A stretch of DNA of 64,000 bases from Felis catus (taxonomy: Eukaryota), in assembly GCF_018350175.1 (NCBI RefSeq), contig NC_058377.1, positions 90,024,001 through 90,088,000 of the forward strand, written 5' to 3'. The translations under genes were made by a program, and so were the position numbers. Of this stretch, positions 31,787-64,000 are shown in pieces. The notes beneath the pieces are model-generated. The model was not told the origin of the DNA, made no database searches, and worked only from the letters and a program-made list of their open reading frames with translations. Positions within the stretch are counted from its first letter, which is position 1, and each line of letters begins with the position of its first letter.

Positions 31787-32001
31787 GGGGCGCCTGGGTG
31801 GCGCAGTCAGTTAAGCGTCCGACTTCAGCCAGGTCACGGTCTCGCGGTCCGGGAGTTCGAGCCCTGCGTCGGGCTCTGGGCTGATGGCTCGGAGCCTGGA
31901 GCCTGTTTCCGATTCTGTGTCTCCCTCTCTCTCTGCCCCTCCCCCGTTCATGCTCTGTCTCTCTCTGTCCCAAAAATAAATAAAAACGTTGAAAAAAAAA
32001 T
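31787..32001 (+). mobile_element. Young felid SINEC with 17-bp TSD taaaaattagtaagttt
   Basis: Diagnostic ggcgcagtc / tcagccaggtcacg / gggctgatggctc / gtcccaaaa; CpGs retained; TSD copies at 31769-31785 and 32002-32018. Confidence 0.95.
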
Positions 32002-38009: not shown

Positions 38010-38975
38010 TCTTGGCAGCCATGATGTGTAATAACCAGAAACCAGAAGCAACCTACACATCTGTCGACTGATGAGCGGGTAGATAAACGAGGTGTATCCA
38101 CACACTCAAGTTCTATTTGGCACTGAAAAAGGAACAAACTATGGACGCGTGCTACGTCACGGACAGCCTTCAAAAATGTGACGCTGGGTAAAAGAAGGCA
38201 GACCCAGAACGCCACATTTGTGTGACTCCATATATACGTAACGTGCAGAAAAGGCAAATGTTTAGAGAGAGAAGGTAGATCGGTGGTTGCCCTGGGGGTG
38301 GAGTGGGAATGGGCACCAGGGATCCTGCACAGAGATGAAAACTCCCTAAAACTGATTGATGCTACTGCTGCATCACTGGGTAAAGTTACAAAAAGCGACC
38401 TGAACTGTACCTCTGAGGTTGCGGGGGTTTCTTTTTTTTTTTTATTGTGGCAAATGTACAGAGCCTGAACTTTGCCACTCTGATAACTTTGGGATGTACA
38501 CTTCGCTGGCATTAAGTACGTGCGCATCGTTGTACAACCATCACTGACATCCACCCTCGGAACGTTTTCATCCTCCCCAACTGAAACTGTGTCCCAGTCA
38601 AGCAGAAACCCCCCTCTCAGCTCCCCACGGTCCCTTACTCTCTTTGAATCTGACTAGTCTAGACACCTCAGGTCAGTGGAATCACACGGTATTTGTCCTT
38701 TGTGACTGCCTTCCTTTGCTTAGAATAATGTCTTCAGGGTTCATCTATGTTGTCGCACGTGTCAAATTATCCTTCCTTATTNNNNNNNNNNNNNNNNNNN
38801 NNNNNNNNNNNNNNNNNNNNNNNNNNNNNNNNNNNNNNNNNNNNNNNNNNNNNNNNNNNNNNNNNNNNNNNNNNNNNNNNNNNNNNNNNNNNNNNNNNNN
38901 NNNNNNNNNNNNNNNNTGACATGTGTGGACTTTATGATACGTAGCACATATCTCAATAAAGTTATTTTAAAATAA
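38010..38975. mobile_element. Old L1M 3' end on + (38010-38420 and 38917-38975) interrupted by an L1MB-like 3' end on - (38425-38781)
   Basis: Typical L1M 3'UTR motifs (aaaaggaacaaact...gcctt-caaaaatgtgacgctgggtaaaagaag; gtggaatcacacggtatttgtcctttgtgactg; terminal ctcaataaag). Confidence 0.75.
38782..38916. other. Assembly gap (135 N)
   Basis: Run of N inside L1 remnants. Confidence 1.
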
Positions 38976-49588: not shown

Positions 49589-50458
49589 CTACATCCCTGA
49601 ATCAGTACTTCGTGGCTGAAAACCCTCCCTCCGGAGACTACCCATGTCAAAGCGGGTAGAGACCTCACAGCGCACTAATAAAGTATCGTCCTTAATGAAG
49701 GTTCTCTGTCTCAGGGCTTCCAGATGCATAAAAGTCACATAGCCAAAACCTTTTGGGTTCCGTGGGATTGTGGGTCTCTGGAAGGCAAGCAGCTCTGGTT
49801 TGGCATCCATGATCTCTTCATGGTTTTGCCTTATAGGTGCCTCAGACTGATCAAGAATCGTAAGGCGGATTGTACCCTGGAAGGGCCAAGGGAGGTGGCT
49901 GTCATACTCTCCTTGCATTGTGTGCACAAAGAGGGATATGTAATTAGCACAGCGCTGAGCCGACGGTAACTGAAGGTGCAGGCGCATGCACAGTTTGTAC
50001 CCGGGTTTGCCTGTGTAGAATCCAGGGCTATGAATGACAACAGGTTTCTCCTCTTCTTGAGATTTCAAATGCATCCCAAAGTTGCCAATCTTCCAGATGT
50101 AAATCCCATTGCACTGCTGTGCTTCTATTTCAACAACTTTGTCCTCAAGGGTTCGAATCGTTTGTTTGAGCTCACTTACGTACATGCTCTGAGTTTCCAT
50201 TTTAGCAATTAGCTCTCGGATTTGATGGTCTTGTCTTACAAGGCGACCCTCTAACTGCTGAATGGTTTCTTGGAAATTCTGGACCTCTGGGTGACACCCA
50301 GTGGAAACCCGGGACGCAGAGGAAGAATCGTATGGAGGCATATCACACTGAGGTACAGGAGGTAACGCAAGGCTTAAACTCTGAACAGCCTGGGCCAACA
50401 TTCTCATGTGCGACTGGGTATTCTCTTGCAGGTGGCGTGCCAAGTGATTCCTCTGCAT
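49589..50458 (-). CDS. TRAF6: TRAF6 terminal coding exon: coiled coil and TRAF-C/MATH domain (MQRNHL...STDSGM*)
   Basis: ORF 49589..50458 (289 aa); acceptor tttttag|ATG; MATH motif [15 protein letters not shown]...[13 protein letters not shown]. Confidence 0.99.
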
Positions 50459-51482: not shown

Positions 51483-51943
51483 TCTTCTTTTTATTCTTAA
51501 AATTACTAAATGCATGCTTATTGTAAAAAAGTCAGACAAAAAAGTATAATGGAAAAGCAAAAACATAGTTGTACTCTCCAGAAAGAATGACTTACAATAA
51601 TCATCGATCTCAAACATGACACAACTGATCATTAGTCTTGAAACTAATTTTTTGGAGAACATAACCATACCATCTCCTTCAATTTCTAATACGGTTTGTT
51701 CACGACTCCTATGACGGTCTGCTTCTCCTTCCTGTACACACTCACTCTATGATCTCAATCGCACCTTCCATCACCATCAGGCATCCCATCAATATCCTGA
51801 GTCCCAGTTTCTGTTTGGAGCTCCAAACTCATACAACAGTGCATGCCAGTCATCTCCCTGTCCACTGGTACTCTCAAATCCACTATGTAACAGAATTTTC
51901 TTCATCGGTATTCAATAATTAAAGAAGAAAAAACAAGCTTTAC

Positions 51944-52021
51944 CTTTACATGGCAACCAAAAGTACTGAATGTGCATGGAATTGGGGCTGTAGGACAGTC
52001 CAGGTCGTAATGATTAGGCAT
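51944..52021 (-). CDS. TRAF6: TRAF6 coding exon 5 ([26 protein letters not shown]), 78 nt
   Basis: Acceptor ttttcag|ATG, donor AAG|gtaaag; found by manual translation. Confidence 0.96.
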
Positions 52022-52780
52022 CTGAAAATCAAAACAAAGGTTAAAAAATGGTTTTCCTTGCATATCATGTTCTAGTTTGATGAGATCACATTTGAAATAA
52101 AGATTTACATTTCATCTAAACAGAATCATGTATTGTCTATGGATGCTTTTGCATAATGCAGAGTTGAGTGGTTACAACAGAAAGCGTGTAGCCCACAAAG
52201 ATTAGTATTTACTTCCAAAGTCACAGAGAAAGGAAATAGCAACATCTCATACCATCCCCCCAAATCGCTCAAAATTCCAGATAACGAGTTTGTTTCTATT
52301 GCTGGGAAACTAACGCCCTCTAGGGACACTTCAGAGAAAAAACTTCTTCTGATGTCAACTACAACTGCAAACTCAAGGACTGCTGTGGTCCAGGCCATTT
52401 AATAGGGACCAGTTAACTGCATGGACCAGCTAATAGGGACCATGCACTGACACCACTGGCTGCACCCATTATTTCCCTCATGACTGTCTCATATGTCCTC
52501 TTACTTTTTTTTAACCAGGGCATGCCTTGATTACCATGGGAAGATGCAGATGTTAGAAGGTATTTTAAAGCACATTAATAACAGTTCTAAAGAAAGTCAC
52601 AGCCTTTGACTCGGGGACTCTAAAACACATTCTTCAAGGTGACACTCATTATGCAAAATTATGTTCCTTGAAAGTGGTACCAAATTCCGTTTAGAAATTT
52701 AGTTTGGCTCTCCTCATAGATACTTCAATCAGAAATGACCTTTGAGACCACTTACTCCAATCCTTCATGTTGTATAGTCT

Positions 52781-54090: not shown

Positions 54091-55511
54091 CTAAATTTTA
54101 TTAAAAAAATATGTAAAAAGCATGAGAAAATTTGAAAAAGAACAGTCTATTTTTATAAAAACTAATTCTTTCACTATAAACAAACTAAGGACCTCAGTTT
54201 GTGCAAAACAAAAATGTAAGAATGATATACAAAGGTTATTTGCCCTCCCTCTGCCAGTGGAGTAATGAGAGATCCATCTTGCCTTCCAGCTCTTTAACAG
54301 AGTATGAGTACACATAAGAGAATCTTCTACACCACTTTTGAACCGAGGCACAGCATCTATGACTAGTTTGGACAAAATTTACCAATACTAGGAGTCTCCA
54401 AAGGCCCCCTTCCAAAAATTTCAAATAGCTGCATGATGACTTAGGTAAAACTCTTTTCAAGAAGGGTAAAAGAAGACAAGTATTATTAGGGCAAGAGGCT
54501 TTAGTGCCCAGGTTCTCATGTGCTCCAGACGGACAGCTCTGTGTTCCAGAATACAATAGATCTGTTCAGTCGATATGCCGAGAAATCATTAAGCTTCCAG
54601 TTTAAGTCCATTTAATTTACTGAAGTTTAGAGAGACATCAATTTGCTCTCATTATGCCTCAAACCTTTCTACATTTTTAGCAAGTTAGCAGACTTTTTTT
54701 AGTATTTCATCAACCTAATGAATATGCTTGATCTTCTAAGAAAGTAGGAAAAATTACCAAGATGAATTTATAAGAAATAAAGTTTAAAGAAGTATCTTAT
54801 TAGTTATAAAAAAAGACATAAATTAGAAGTAGGTTATTTCAGTAAAGGCATAAGACAGGGATCCAGTTCTAGGATCTCAGTGCTAGCTTTGCCACGGACT
54901 ACACTAACATAAAATTACTTAACCTCTCCCCATCTCAGTTTCTGAATGGAAAACTGTTCTATGGTTACGGTGTGGTCAAGCACCATGAAGTTTCTTTTTA
55001 AAGATACACATTTTAATTGAAGTGTAACATGTACAGAAAAGTGAATTCATTACATGTGTACAGCTCGATGAATTATCACCAAAGGAACACACTTTGTGGA
55101 ATTTAATTTATTCTCCCTAAAGGTTTTAACAACCCATTCTTTTCAAAGTGAAAAGTGTGAGTCTGATAAAGTCATCATTCTACTTGTTTGTCTCTAATCC
55201 AAGACTGGTCATTAAAAAAACATATCACATAGGAAAGTAGATTAGCAAGTCTTTCCTAGAAGCTTGTGTTACTCACAGATCTACTATAGTGGTTACGTCG
55301 TATAAACAATGTTTTCTAAGAAAGATATACAAGTATAAACCCTACACTTACTTAACTGGTTTACTGAACCTTCTTTCTTAAACATCAAGCTTCCCACACA
55401 TGATCACAGAGACCCGGATTTGGAGTAACATCTTCATCTCTTACCCTCAAATGTACATTAACATTTTTTTTTAAGAAGTAGGGAAATTAACAAATCCAAG
55501 CTGGTACGTGC

Positions 55512-55670
55512 CTCTTTATCTTCAAATGCCATCAATGCAGCACAGTTTACACAAGAAACCTGTCTCCTTGGACACTCCTTGAGAATGTGAATATTAAGTT
55601 GGCATTTTTGGAAGGGACGCTGGCACTGAGGACAATTCATAAGAGCAAATTCACAATGTGCTTGGTGATC
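55512..55670 (-). CDS. TRAF6: TRAF6 coding exon 3 ([16 protein letters not shown]...AFEDKE), 159 nt, GC donor
   Basis: Acceptor ttatag|GAT; zinc-finger Cys/His pattern; the frame into the next exon requires donor GAG|gcacgt. Confidence 0.95.
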
Positions 55671-57135: not shown

Positions 57136-58580
57136 GACGACTTCACGTTGTTTTACAAAGCTGTAATCATCAAGACAATACGGTACTGGCACAAAAACAG
57201 ACACTCAGATCAATGGAACAGAATAGAGAACCCAGAAATGGACCCACAAACGTACGGCCAACTAATCTTTGACAAAGCAGGAAAGAATATCCAATGGAAT
57301 AAAGACAGCCTCTTTAGCAAGTGGTGCTGGGAAAACTGGACAGCAACATGCAGAACAATGAACCTGGACCACTTCTTACACCATACACAAAAATAGACTC
57401 AAAATGGATGAAAGACCTCAATGTAAGACAGGAAGCCATCCAAATCCTTGAAGAGAAAGCAGGCAAAAACCTCTTTGATCTTGGCTGCAGCAACTTCTTA
57501 CTCAACACGTCTCCAGAGGCAAGGGAAACAAAAGCAAAAATGAACTACTGGGACCTCATCAAAATAAAAAGCTTCTCCACAGCGAAGGAAACAATCAGCA
57601 AAACTAAAAGGCAACCGATGGAATGGGAGAAGATATTTGCAAACGACGTATCAGATAAAGGGTTAGTATCCAAAATCTATAAAGAACTTATCAAACTCAA
57701 CACCCAAAAAACAANNNNNNNNNNNNNNNNNNNNNNNNNNNNNNNNNNNNNNNNNNNNNNNNNNNNNNNNNNNNNNNNNNNNNNNNNNNNNNNNNNNNNN
57801 NNNNNNNNNNNNNNNNNNNNNNNNNNNNNNNNNNNNNNNNNNNNNNNNNNNNNNNNNNNNNNNNNNNNNNNNNNNNNNNNNNNNNNNNNNNNNNNNNNNN
57901 NNNNNNNNNNNNNNNNNNNNNNNNNNNNNNNNNNNNNNNTGCTGGTGGGAATGCAAGCTGGTGCAGCCACTCTGGAAAACAGTATGGAGGTTCCTCAAAA
58001 AATTAAAAATAGAACTACCCTATGACCCAGCAACTGCATTACTAAGCACTTATCCAAGGGATACAGGTGTGCTGTTTCGAAGGGGTACATGCACCCCAAT
58101 GTTTATAGCAGCACTATCAACAATAGCCAAAGTATGGAAGAAGCCCAAATGTCCATCAATGGATGAATGGATAAAGATGATATGGTGTATATACAATGGA
58201 GTATTACTCAGCAATCAAAAAGAATGAAATCTTGCCATTTGCAACTACGTGGATGGAACTAGAGGGTATTATGCTAAGCAAAATTAGTCAGTCAAAGAAA
58301 AACAACTATCATATGACTTCACTCATATGGTGACTTTACCATACAAAACAGATGAACATAAGGGAAGGGAAGGAAAAATAATATAAAAACAGGGAGGGAG
58401 ACAAAACATAAGAGACTCTTAAATATGGAGAACAGACAGTTACTGGAGGGGCTGTGGGAGGGGGATGGGCTAAACGGGTAAGGGGCATTAAGGAATCTAC
58501 TCCTGAAATCACTGTCACACTATATGCTAGCTAACTTGGACGTAAATTTTAAAAATTAACTAAATTTTAAAAAAAGGTCA
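57136..58580 (+). mobile_element. 5'-truncated, frameshifted carnivore/felid L1 (ORF2 C-terminus plus 3'UTR), antisense to TRAF6
   Basis: ORFs read [40 protein letters not shown] and CTPMFIAALSTIAKVWKKPKCPSMDEWIK (L1 ORF2p); frame break near 57375. Confidence 0.95.
57715..57939. other. Assembly gap (225 N) inside the L1
   Basis: Run of N. Confidence 1.
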
Positions 58581-58756: not shown

Positions 58757-58907
58757 CTCAAGATGCCTCAGTTCCATCTTGTGCAAACAACCTTCATTTG
58801 GACATTTCACCATCAGAGAAAGAATCTCTCGTTTTGCAAAATTGTCAGGAAATAGTTGATTTTCCAGCAGTATTTCATTGTCAACTGGACATTTGTGACC
58901 TGCATCC
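58757..58907 (-). CDS. TRAF6: TRAF6 coding exon 2 ([10 protein letters not shown]...MELRHLE), 151 nt: RING end and zinc finger 1, includes K124
   Basis: Acceptor ttttag|G, donor GAG|gtatta; ORF 58736..58936. Confidence 0.98.
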
Positions 58908-59911: not shown

Positions 59912-60120
59912 GGGGCGCCTGGGTGGCTCAGCTGGTTGAGAGTCTGACTTTGGCTCAGGTCGTGATCTCACAGTTTGTGAATTTGAGCACCACATTGGGC
60001 TGTCTGCTGCCAGCACAGAGCCTGCTTCATATCCCCTGCCCCCTCTCTCTCCGCCCCTCCCCTGCTCCTGCGCACATGCTCTCTCTCAAAATTAAATAAA
60101 AACATTAAAAAAAAAAAAAA
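59912..60120 (+). mobile_element. SINEC
   Basis: Head ggggcgcctgggtggctcag and A tail. Confidence 0.9.
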
Positions 60121-60634
60121 AGGAAATAAATACGTGCCCCAAACCTAAGTGATGGATAACTAAAAGAAAGTAAGAACAATCTTACAGAGTAAACTGGAAA
60201 CCACTGTCCACAGCATTAGCAATCACTCCGAATGGAAATGGAATTGGACTGAGATGTATTTTGATTCCTTGAATGACCATAACAGATGAAAAATTTCAGA
60301 GCTGTTTCTTTAAGAATTTTAGAGTTAAAGCTAAGTGGTCATTTCTAACTTAGAGGGAGAGAGAAACAAAAAAAAGGCTCAGACTTCCTTTTGTGGGTTT
60401 TACTTCCTTTTCAGACCACTGTCCCACTACTTGCATGAATATTTTGCTATTAAAAAACTGCTAAAGATTCGTTACCTTCCTGGGATGCATGACACTTGGT
60501 AAAATACTATACATTTCTACCTATAGGAAAATCAACAATCCATTTTTGTTACCTACATACAATATAGATAAAAATCATAATAAACAACAACAAAAAATTG
60601 AGCCTTTAACGTCATTCTCGTGTATATTCTAAAC

Positions 60635-60839: not shown

Positions 60840-60885
60840 CCCTAAACAGACCTTAGCAATTCAATAATGGGTGACACATCTTTTT

Positions 60886-61106
60886 TTAAAATTTTTTTTT
60901 TTCAACATTTATTTATTTTTGGGACAGAGAGAGACAGAGCGTGAACAGGGGAGGGGCAGAGAGAGAGGGAGACACAGAATCGGAAACAGGCTCCAGGCTC
61001 TGAGCCATCAGCCCAGAGCCCGACGCGGGGCTCGAACTCACGGACCGCGAGATCGTGACCTGGCTGAAGTCGGACGCTTAACTGACTGCGCCACCCAGGC
61101 GCCCCC
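60886..61106 (-). mobile_element. Young felid SINEC with TSD gacacatcttttt
   Basis: TSD copies at 60873-60885 and 61107-61119; same diagnostic positions as 31787. Confidence 0.95.
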
Positions 61107-61479
61107 GACACATCTTTTTCAAAAAGTGATACAAGCCACATGTTCCCTTCTAACTTAAATTAAGCCAAGTCCCAAATATGGATGTAGTTATCCCAAATTC
61201 AAGTTTTATAGCAAAGTTAATTTAAAAGTTGAAAGAGAAAAACTTGAAGACTAGTGAATAGTCAGCTTAAGAATGATTTTACCAATATAACTAGATATTT
61301 ACTGAAGAACATAAAATACCCCCACTTCTTCCAATATTTTTGCTCTGAATAGAACTCCTTAGTCACCTAGAAATATTCCCATCTACTTCTGAATTATAGT
61401 AAAATGTATCTATTTCTCAGGAGATGAACTTGAATCACCTGTGGAAATCCCATACACCTTCATTCGGTTAAAGCAACCA

Positions 61480-62182: not shown

Positions 62183-62440
62183 GGGTGCCTGAATCTCCCA
62201 GTCTGTTAAGCGTCTGACCCTGGATTTGGGCTAAGGTCGTGATCTCACTTGAGATTTGTGAGTTCGAGCCCCATGTCTGGCTCTGCACTGACAATGCATA
62301 GCATGCTTGGGATTCTCTCTCTCCCTCCCTCCCTCCCTCCCTCCCTCCCTCCCTCCCTCCCTCCCTCCCGCCCCTGCTCGTGCTTGCTCTCTCTCTCTTT
62401 CAAATAAATAAATAGAAACTTAAAAAAATAAAAAATAAAA
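62183..62440 (+). mobile_element. Older SINEC with expanded (CCCT)n
   Basis: Degenerate head gggtgcctgaatctcccagtctgttaag; (CCCT)~12 at 62323-62369. Confidence 0.88.
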
Positions 62441-62532
62441 ATACTGGTGATTTTACAGTTGTCTATAGGCACCAGGTAACACAAGTTTACAGGGCTACTA
62501 AAATAACTGATCACTTAAGAGTAGCATTCCTT

Positions 62533-62754
62533 GGGGCGCCTGGGTGGCGCAGTCGGTTAAGCGTCCGACTTCAGCCAGGTCACGATCTCGCGGTCCGGGA
62601 GTTCGAGCCCCGCATCAGGCTCTGGGCTGATGGCTCGGAGCCTGGAGCCTGTTTCTGATTCTGTGTCTCCCTCTCTCTCTGCCCCTCCCCCGTTCATGCT
62701 CTGTCTCTCTCTGTCCCAAAAAGAAATAAAAACGTTGAAAAAAAAAAATTAAAA
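62533..62754 (+). mobile_element. Young felid SINEC with 16-bp TSD aagagtagcattcctt
   Basis: TSD copies at 62517-62532 and 62755-62770. Confidence 0.96.
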
Positions 62755-62825
62755 AAGAGTAGCATTCCTTGTATGATTGAGACTGTCAGATTCTAGTAGC
62801 ATCGTCATTTAAGGTACATTTATTT

Positions 62826-62932
62826 TTTTATAAGCTTTTATTTTTAAGTAATCCGTACACCCAATGTGGGGCTCAAACCCACAACCCCAAGACTGAGAGT
62901 TGCACATTCCAACTGAGCCAGCCAGGTGCCCC
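62826..62932 (-). mobile_element. Short old carnivore SINE (no CT tract), 16-bp TSD taaggtacatttattt
   Basis: TSD copies at 62810-62825 and 62933-62948. Confidence 0.85.
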
Positions 62933-63249
62933 TAAGGTACATTTATTTTATATTATTTTCTTAGAGCATAGAGACTCACCTCCTAGTGTGCAACAGAAGT
63001 GTTTTAAGTAGAAGTGGCTGATTTACCTGTTTATTTACCTGAGGGTCAGGAGGGGACAAGACAGCAGTTACTTTTCCCACCGCAGGAGAAACTGAAATAA
63101 GAATCTAAATTGCTCCACTTGCTGTCCAGTGTTCTTTTCCCTAAGTAACTTGTTATGTGTAAGACTAGCCCCAGAAGGGCCTGTGTTCTAGGTGATAATG
63201 TTGTCTGTGCTTGGCTCCGTTACAGGACATGGCTCTGACACTTACGTAC

Positions 63250-63545
63250 CTTATTGATTTGATGATGCAAGCTCTGCAGAACCTGTGGCCGCACGGTGTC
63301 TGCACTGCCTCCCGGAGAGCCATCAGGCAGATGGGGCACTCATACTTGCTCTCCAGGGGCGGGTCAAACTCCACGTCATACCCCTGGGTCTCTTCCATGA
63401 AAGAGTTGGAGAGGTTCCCCGTGCTGGCGGTTCCACTCACACTGTCATCTTTCGCCGCAGCGCTACAGGAGCTGGCCATGGCGGCACAGCAGTCACTCTC
63501 AGACTGGCTGGATCCGCAGCTGTTTTCACAGTTTAGCAGACTCAT
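63250..63545 (-). CDS. TRAF6: TRAF6 first coding exon ([10 protein letters not shown]...RING N-terminal part ...CIIKSIR). Whole exon is 63250-63567, including 22 nt of 5'UTR
   Basis: ATG at 63545; acceptor cctacag|AGCGG at 63567; donor ATAAG|gtacgt; C3HC-type RING motif [24 protein letters not shown]. Confidence 0.98.
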
Positions 63546-63762
63546 AGTAACGTAATTATCAACCGCTCTGTAGGAACAATGAGAAAAGAATGCATTAACA
63601 TGTGCACACAGGCACACACGTATGCCATAGCCTACCTGTACACTTCACCTTTCGGTTGATATGCATTAGCTAAGTTAACGTTATTCACAGAAGACTTTGA
63701 AAGTTCTTTGAGTTTTGCTTCATGACTACGATTCTTATTTTAAAAATATTTTTTATATTTTT

Positions 63763-63984
63763 TTTTTTAATTTTTTTTTTTCAACGTTTATTTATTTTTG
63801 GGACAGAGAGAGACAGAGCATGAACGGGGGAGGGGCAGAGAGAGAGGGAGACACAGAATCGGAAACAGGCTCCAGGCTCTGAGCCATCAGCCCAGAGCCT
63901 GACGCGGGGCTCGAACTCCCGGACCGCGAGATCGTGACCTGGCTGAAGTCGGACGCTTAACCGACTGCGCCACCCAGGCGCCCC
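63763..63984 (-). mobile_element. Young felid SINEC with TSD tattttttatattttt
   Basis: TSD copies at 63747-63762 and 63985-64000. Confidence 0.96.
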
Positions 63985-64000
63985 TATTTTTTATATTTTT

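Follow-up and report, generated by a model that had tools for sequence, protein, structure and literature searches.

In minigenes, sense and antisense repeats in the introns on either side of an exon are said to drive efficient circularisation, a finding credited to Liang and Wilusz in 2014 and to Zhang et al. in 2014. In the primate system the repeats are 7SL-derived Alus, placed in sense and antisense orientation in the introns on either side of an internal exon whose splice sites are canonical, and the resulting circles have been observed. Inverted Alus within 2,300 nt accompany 45% of circRNAs, and they also accompany 22% of ordinary host exons; because ordinary exons so often have them, an inverted pair is a weak predictor of circularisation (PMC6487579). 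Circles that depend on such repeats are of the DHX9-sensitive kind, being suppressed by this helicase, and they are poorly conserved (PMC6487579). The efficiency of circularisation is set by the competition between pairing across introns and pairing within one intron, according to the account of Zhang et al. 2014 that is given in summary in PMC5731806, and back-splicing is reported to be largely post-transcriptional (PMC5731806).

Two groups of circular RNA bear on the coding potential of a circularised start-codon exon. The AUG circRNAs, which derive from the second exon and contain the host start codon with the N-terminal part of the ORF, form an abundant and conserved class, and neither ribosome profiling nor proteomics nor cross-species analysis yielded any sign that its members are translated (Stagsted et al. 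2019, PMC6487579); their flanking introns are very long (>6.5 kb), their inverted repeats are distal, and they are insensitive to DHX9. The second group comprises circles with a rolling-circle ORF (rcORF), whose length is a multiple of three and whose host frame has no stop, among them circPSAP, circPFAS and circABHD12 (PMC9242994) and circTau 12->10 (PMC11724312). In 14% of human circRNAs the host frame continues without a stop around the whole circle, and ORFs of this kind are reported to be translated with greater efficiency than circles that contain stops; the concatemeric products that were tested were degraded by the proteasome and reported to misfold (Fan et al., PMC9242994). Rolling-circle translation of cellular circRNAs has thus been reported in two studies (PMC9242994; PMC11724312), on the strength of junction peptides or reporter blots.

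The repeats of interest here are CanSINEs, the tRNA-derived SINEs of carnivores. Among feliform copies, subfamily II and its subtype IIB are marked by the motif GGCTCGG and by a G in the A box; insertions of subtype IIB have been dated to <5 My, and insertion hotspots have been described (Walters-Conte et al. 2014, PMC4084570).

The window, by which we mean the whole 64-kb stretch of DNA that was analysed, contains TRAF6 on its minus strand. Searched exon by exon against Pfam, the gene agrees with the domain order expected of TRAF6 (RING, TRAF6-type zinc fingers, coiled coil, MATH), with matches to the RING in the peptide of 63252-63545 (residues 69-97, profile positions 1-30 of 40), to the TRAF6-specific second zinc finger (PF18048, TRAF6_Z2; 55461-55670, E 3.5e-18), to a zf-TRAF zinc finger (51905-52111) and, in the last exon, to the TRAF/meprin MATH domain (49592-50458, E 9e-46). 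The first coding exon, which is exon 2 of the gene, occupies 63250-63567 on the minus strand. Its 318 nt (106 codons) consist of a 22-nt leader and 296 coding nt, namely codons 1-98 and 2 nt of the next; the first ATG stands at exon position 23 (63545-63543) and has an A at -3. Both splice sites are canonical, with the acceptor AG at 63568-63569 formed by a polypyrimidine tract and CAG, and the donor GT at 63248-63249 in the context GTACGT. The boundaries and the length of the exon are as an earlier note on this DNA had given them. The same note held that the RING lacks its last ligand pair in this exon, and we do indeed read that pair, C105/D108, outside it, at the beginning of the second coding exon (exon 3; 58757-58907, minus strand, 151 nt), which starts R99(part)-DAGHK-C105-PV-D108. 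The intron downstream of the first coding exon measures 4342 nt, and 433 nt of the upstream intron lie within the window before it ends at position 64000. The window also holds two runs of N, at 38782-38916 (135 bases) and at 57715-57939 (225 bases), the second of which falls in the TRAF6 intron downstream of the second coding exon.

Twenty copies of one SINE are present in the 64-kb window, and four of these are young, with bodies at 31787-31976 (+), 60916-61105 (-), 62533-62722 (+) and 63795-63984 (-). Two of the young copies bracket the first coding exon. The upstream copy, which we call U, extends over 63763-63984 on the minus strand, sense to TRAF6, and lies in the intron with 195 nt between it and the exon. 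Its parts are a tRNA-like head, a CT-rich body and a tail rich in A, where AATAAA stands at 63796, and it is framed by the target-site duplication AAATATAAAAAATA at 63985-63998 and 63747-63760. The downstream copy, D2, extends over 62533-62754 on the plus strand, antisense to TRAF6, 495 nt after the exon, with the target-site duplication AAGAGTAGCATTCCTT at 62517-62532 and 62755-62770. A third young copy, D4 (60886-61105, minus strand, sense to TRAF6), shares the downstream intron with D2 and has the target-site duplication AAAAAGATGTGTC at 61107-61119 and 60873-60885. The same intron contains two old copies in antisense orientation, D3 (62183-62441, plus strand, diverged to 67% identity) and D5 (59912-60140, plus strand). 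The arrangement of the inverted pair, together with its distances from the exon and a count of 3 differences in 190 body nucleotides, had been described before, and all of it was reproduced here: global alignment of the U and D2 bodies gave 3/190 differences, all at CpG sites, and a repeat finder returned arms of 198 nt (62533-62730 and 63787-63984) that are 98% complementary.

The 98.4% identity of this pair is not special, since any two young copies show the like: the six pairwise comparisons among the four gave 3, 5, 5, 6, 6 and 8 differences per 190, mostly at CpG sites. We considered whether selection or gene conversion between the arms could have caused the identity of U and D2, and rejected this on the equal similarity of unlinked young copies. 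An inverted segmental duplication or an assembly artefact was likewise rejected, as the similarity ends at the borders of the SINE and each copy has a separate target-site duplication. U, D2 and D4 have three different perfect target-site duplications, and they are therefore independent insertions.

In their structure the young copies correspond to feliform CanSINE subfamily II, of IIB-like type, with a tRNA-related head, A and B boxes, an A/T tail and target-site duplications. The sequences TGGCGCAGTCGG and GAGTTCGAGCC could be read directly, and the G of the polymerase III A box is present. D2 and the copy at 31787 keep GGCTCGG unchanged; in U and D4, CpG decay has turned it into GGCTCAG. 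The young copies resemble subfamily II/IIB further in their very low divergence, their perfect target-site duplications and their local clustering (PMC4084570); the assignment to IIB rests on motif marks, the marks compared being other than the subtype-defining T indel (position 51 in the alignment of PMC4084570). ARAGORN called no tRNA in the SINE region, as expected for a SINE head. These marks identify the genome as that of a felid. With U, D2 and D4, the youngest subfamily has inserted three times in 3.1 kb, a cluster with the look of a local insertion hotspot.

We then considered how these copies might pair in the pre-mRNA. When the 1452 nt between the outer ends of the pair (62533-63984) were folded as RNA, one long SINE stem closed the exon. 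In pairwise co-folding, U and D2 formed 217 bp across the exon with a ddG of -325 kcal/mol, while D2 and D4, the latter 1.4 kb further on, formed 212 bp within the downstream intron with a ddG of -303 kcal/mol. The old copy D3 is a weak alternative partner for U or D4 (ddG -116 and -124). In the minimum-energy fold of the 4.1 kb that run from the end of the window almost to exon 3, the U:D2 duplex was kept with 217 pairs and D4 was taken by D5 with 162 pairs, which leaves D2 free for U. The structural premise of the earlier note, an inverted pair able to join across the exon, is upheld in that U:D2 is the favoured fold of the visible pre-mRNA, but the note had overlooked D4, a near-equal partner for D2 within the same intron. 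Nor does the order of transcription give U:D2 a sure advantage, because back-splicing is largely post-transcriptional (PMC5731806). In these models the duplex across the exon appears to be thermodynamically favoured in the visible region, and U might be captured by antisense SINEs in the part of the upstream intron that lies past 64000, if such copies are present there.

Like the exons of inverted-Alu circRNAs, TRAF6 exon 2 is an internal exon with canonical splice sites and with sense and antisense SINEs in its flanking introns; the repeats stand 690 nt in total from the splice sites, well inside the 2,300-nt cut-off for Alu-dependent circles (PMC6487579), and there is competition with a partner within one intron, as for inverted-repeat circRNAs (PMC5731806). 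The repeats differ in origin, being tRNA-derived feliform CanSINEs where the primate ones are 7SL-derived Alus, and the primate circles are observed whereas the one proposed here is read from sequence alone. The predicted circle resembles the AUG circRNAs in its origin from the second exon and in containing the host start codon with the N-terminal part of the ORF (PMC6487579). It is unlike that class in its downstream intron of 4342 nt, in its proximal repeats (195 and 495 nt from the exon) and in the lineage-specific arrangement of these repeats. With the rcORF circles it would share a length of 3n and a host frame without stop; those circles are known from junction peptides or reporter blots, the TRAF6 circle only as a prediction from the DNA.

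These observations are best explained by recent and independent retroposition, probably neutral, of copies from a young feliform CanSINE subfamily into the A/T-rich introns that surround TRAF6 exon 2. Owing to the youth of the copies, any sense and antisense pair is almost perfectly complementary, and in the pre-mRNA the sense U and the antisense D2 can form a duplex of about 217 bp that brings the donor and acceptor of the exon together. This duplex should permit some back-splicing by the established inverted-repeat mechanism, and so to a 318-nt circle with the start codon, an AUG circRNA. We think it probable that the insertions are neutral and that any circle is a minor, untranslated by-product whose open frame is coincidental. 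The minor and untranslated status of such a circle is our prior expectation, in that we infer both its rarity and its lack of translation; it could be commoner than we assume, because the two repeats lie unusually near the splice sites (690 nt in total) and their match is unusually perfect. Whether the circle would be detectable in deep total-RNA data seems to us close to an even call, leaning slightly towards no, and that it would make up at least 10% of TRAF6 output is quite improbable. In genomes rich in SINEs, stop-free frames and inverted SINE brackets both arise commonly as by-products.

The main consequence of the SINEs might lie elsewhere than in circularisation, which we regard as unlikely but deserving of weight. 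In one form of this explanation the duplex would be edited by ADAR and unwound by DHX9 with no effect on splicing; ADAR acts mainly on long intramolecular double strands, which DHX9 resolves (PMC11724312). In another form the SINEs would act singly, and both copies have features that would suit them to this. As it appears in the TRAF6 transcript (62700-62754, minus strand), the antisense D2 has a long run of T, then ...CTTTTTGGGACAG and more AGs; this could plausibly serve as a cryptic 3' splice site, through which part of the element might be exonised. The sense U has an AATAAA (63791-63796, minus strand) and an A-rich tail about 230 nt before the start-codon exon, and might signal premature polyadenylation within the 5'UTR intron; for dog, one study reports that CanSINEs import polyadenylation signals (10.1101/2020.11.30.405357). 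Most intronic SINEs, however, are without such an effect.

A SINE-dependent circTRAF6 might instead be substantial and act through RNA processing, with back-splicing of exon 2 competing with linear splicing. The outcome would be either less productive TRAF6 mRNA or transcripts that join exon 1 to exon 3 and so are without the start codon and the initial portion of the RING; TRAF6 dosage would thereby be tuned in a lineage-specific way. The U:D2 duplex is strong, forms near the splice sites and is the pairing that the fold prefers, and the only canonical start codon sits in this exon; moreover, U and D2 are both young, and any effect would be lineage-specific as a consequence. The near-equal competitor D4 in the downstream intron speaks against a substantial effect, however. 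TRAF6 is a dosage-sensitive signalling gene, so that a large loss of its product would probably be selected against. Circles of the inverted-repeat type are, in addition, typically suppressed by DHX9 and poorly conserved (PMC6487579), and altogether we judge this explanation distinctly unlikely.

The coding potential of the predicted circle is of interest in its own right. A local script read the 318-nt circle through three laps and found 0 stops in the TRAF6 frame, against 30 and 15 in the other two frames; the claim that the back-spliced exon has no stop in this frame, with the junction R-AVDNYVT-M, is borne out by this reading, which gives the same junction. With a length of 3n, no in-frame stop and an AUG, the circle has the sequence features of a rolling-circle ORF. 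How often such a frame arises by chance can be estimated from the eight junction codons, which stay open in 56% of leader shuffles, in 62% of random leaders of the local composition and in 68% of cases under uniform codon use; the chance expectation of a stop-free circle from a start-codon exon is about 0.2 (P(3n) of 1/3 multiplied by P(open junction) of 0.56-0.68), or about 1 in 5. We expect the open frame to be a coincidence of the exon length and of a 22-nt leader that happens to contain no stop.

The predicted repeat unit is an acidic peptide of 106 residues (residues 1-99 followed by AVDNYVT) with a mass of 11.3 kDa and 10 cysteines. The match to the RING profile ends at position 30 of 40, and C105/D108 are encoded in exon 3; therefore one zinc site cannot form. 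From its predicted sequence, we would sooner expect this truncated RING to misfold than to work as a decoy. The exon contains nine DRACH matches, a count as for any 318-nt coding exon. The full model that builds on the earlier note, in which an exported circle is read by ribosomes lap after lap, starting at the TRAF6 AUG, to give concatemers of the 106-residue unit that act as decoys through their incomplete RING, is highly improbable, as the 3n length, the open frame, the AUG with A at -3 and the reported cases of rolling-circle translation (PMC9242994; PMC11724312) are set against an ordinary number of DRACH matches, the lack of translation found for AUG circRNAs as a class (PMC6487579), the missing zinc site, and the misfolding and degradation reported for concatemeric products (PMC9242994). 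A detectable rolling-circle product is scarcely to be expected.

On the preferred reading, of neutral insertions with at most a minor circle, the locus as it stands is one of many predicted candidates and adds nothing new on mechanism; it is of use, at the same time, as a well-defined test case whose coordinates are exact and whose competitor element, D4, has been named. Judged from its sequence features, TRAF6 would be a reasonable circRNA candidate and the decoy idea a speculative one. It is very unlikely, in our view, that a circTRAF6 made by two SINE insertions of the last few My is abundant and functional in felid immune cells, whether by diversion of the mRNA or by endless repeats of a RING fragment; were this so, a core innate-immune adaptor would have a lineage-specific regulator built by transposons. 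Demonstration of a SINE-dependent circTRAF6 would in itself offer a natural experiment on the creation of a circular RNA by recent transposon insertion at a key NF-kB gene, with relatives or alleles that lack one of the SINEs as the comparison, and would extend the inverted-Alu model to the tRNA-derived SINEs of carnivores. In the literature collection consulted, a search for circTRAF6, which covered spelling variants and TRAF6-derived circles, returned no relevant paper; a search on CanSINEs together with circRNAs returned no paper that links the two, and one for feline circRNA surveys found none.

Two minor features of the downstream intron complete the description of the region. The old copy D3 holds a (GGGA)n microsatellite of about 65 nt (62320-62385), which appears as TCCC repeats on the plus strand. 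Between the exon and D2, at 62845-62945, lies a fragment of the head of an older and different tRNA-like SINE in sense orientation (GGGGCACCTGGCTGGCTCAGTTGG...), which pairs weakly with D2 (ddG -26 kcal/mol).
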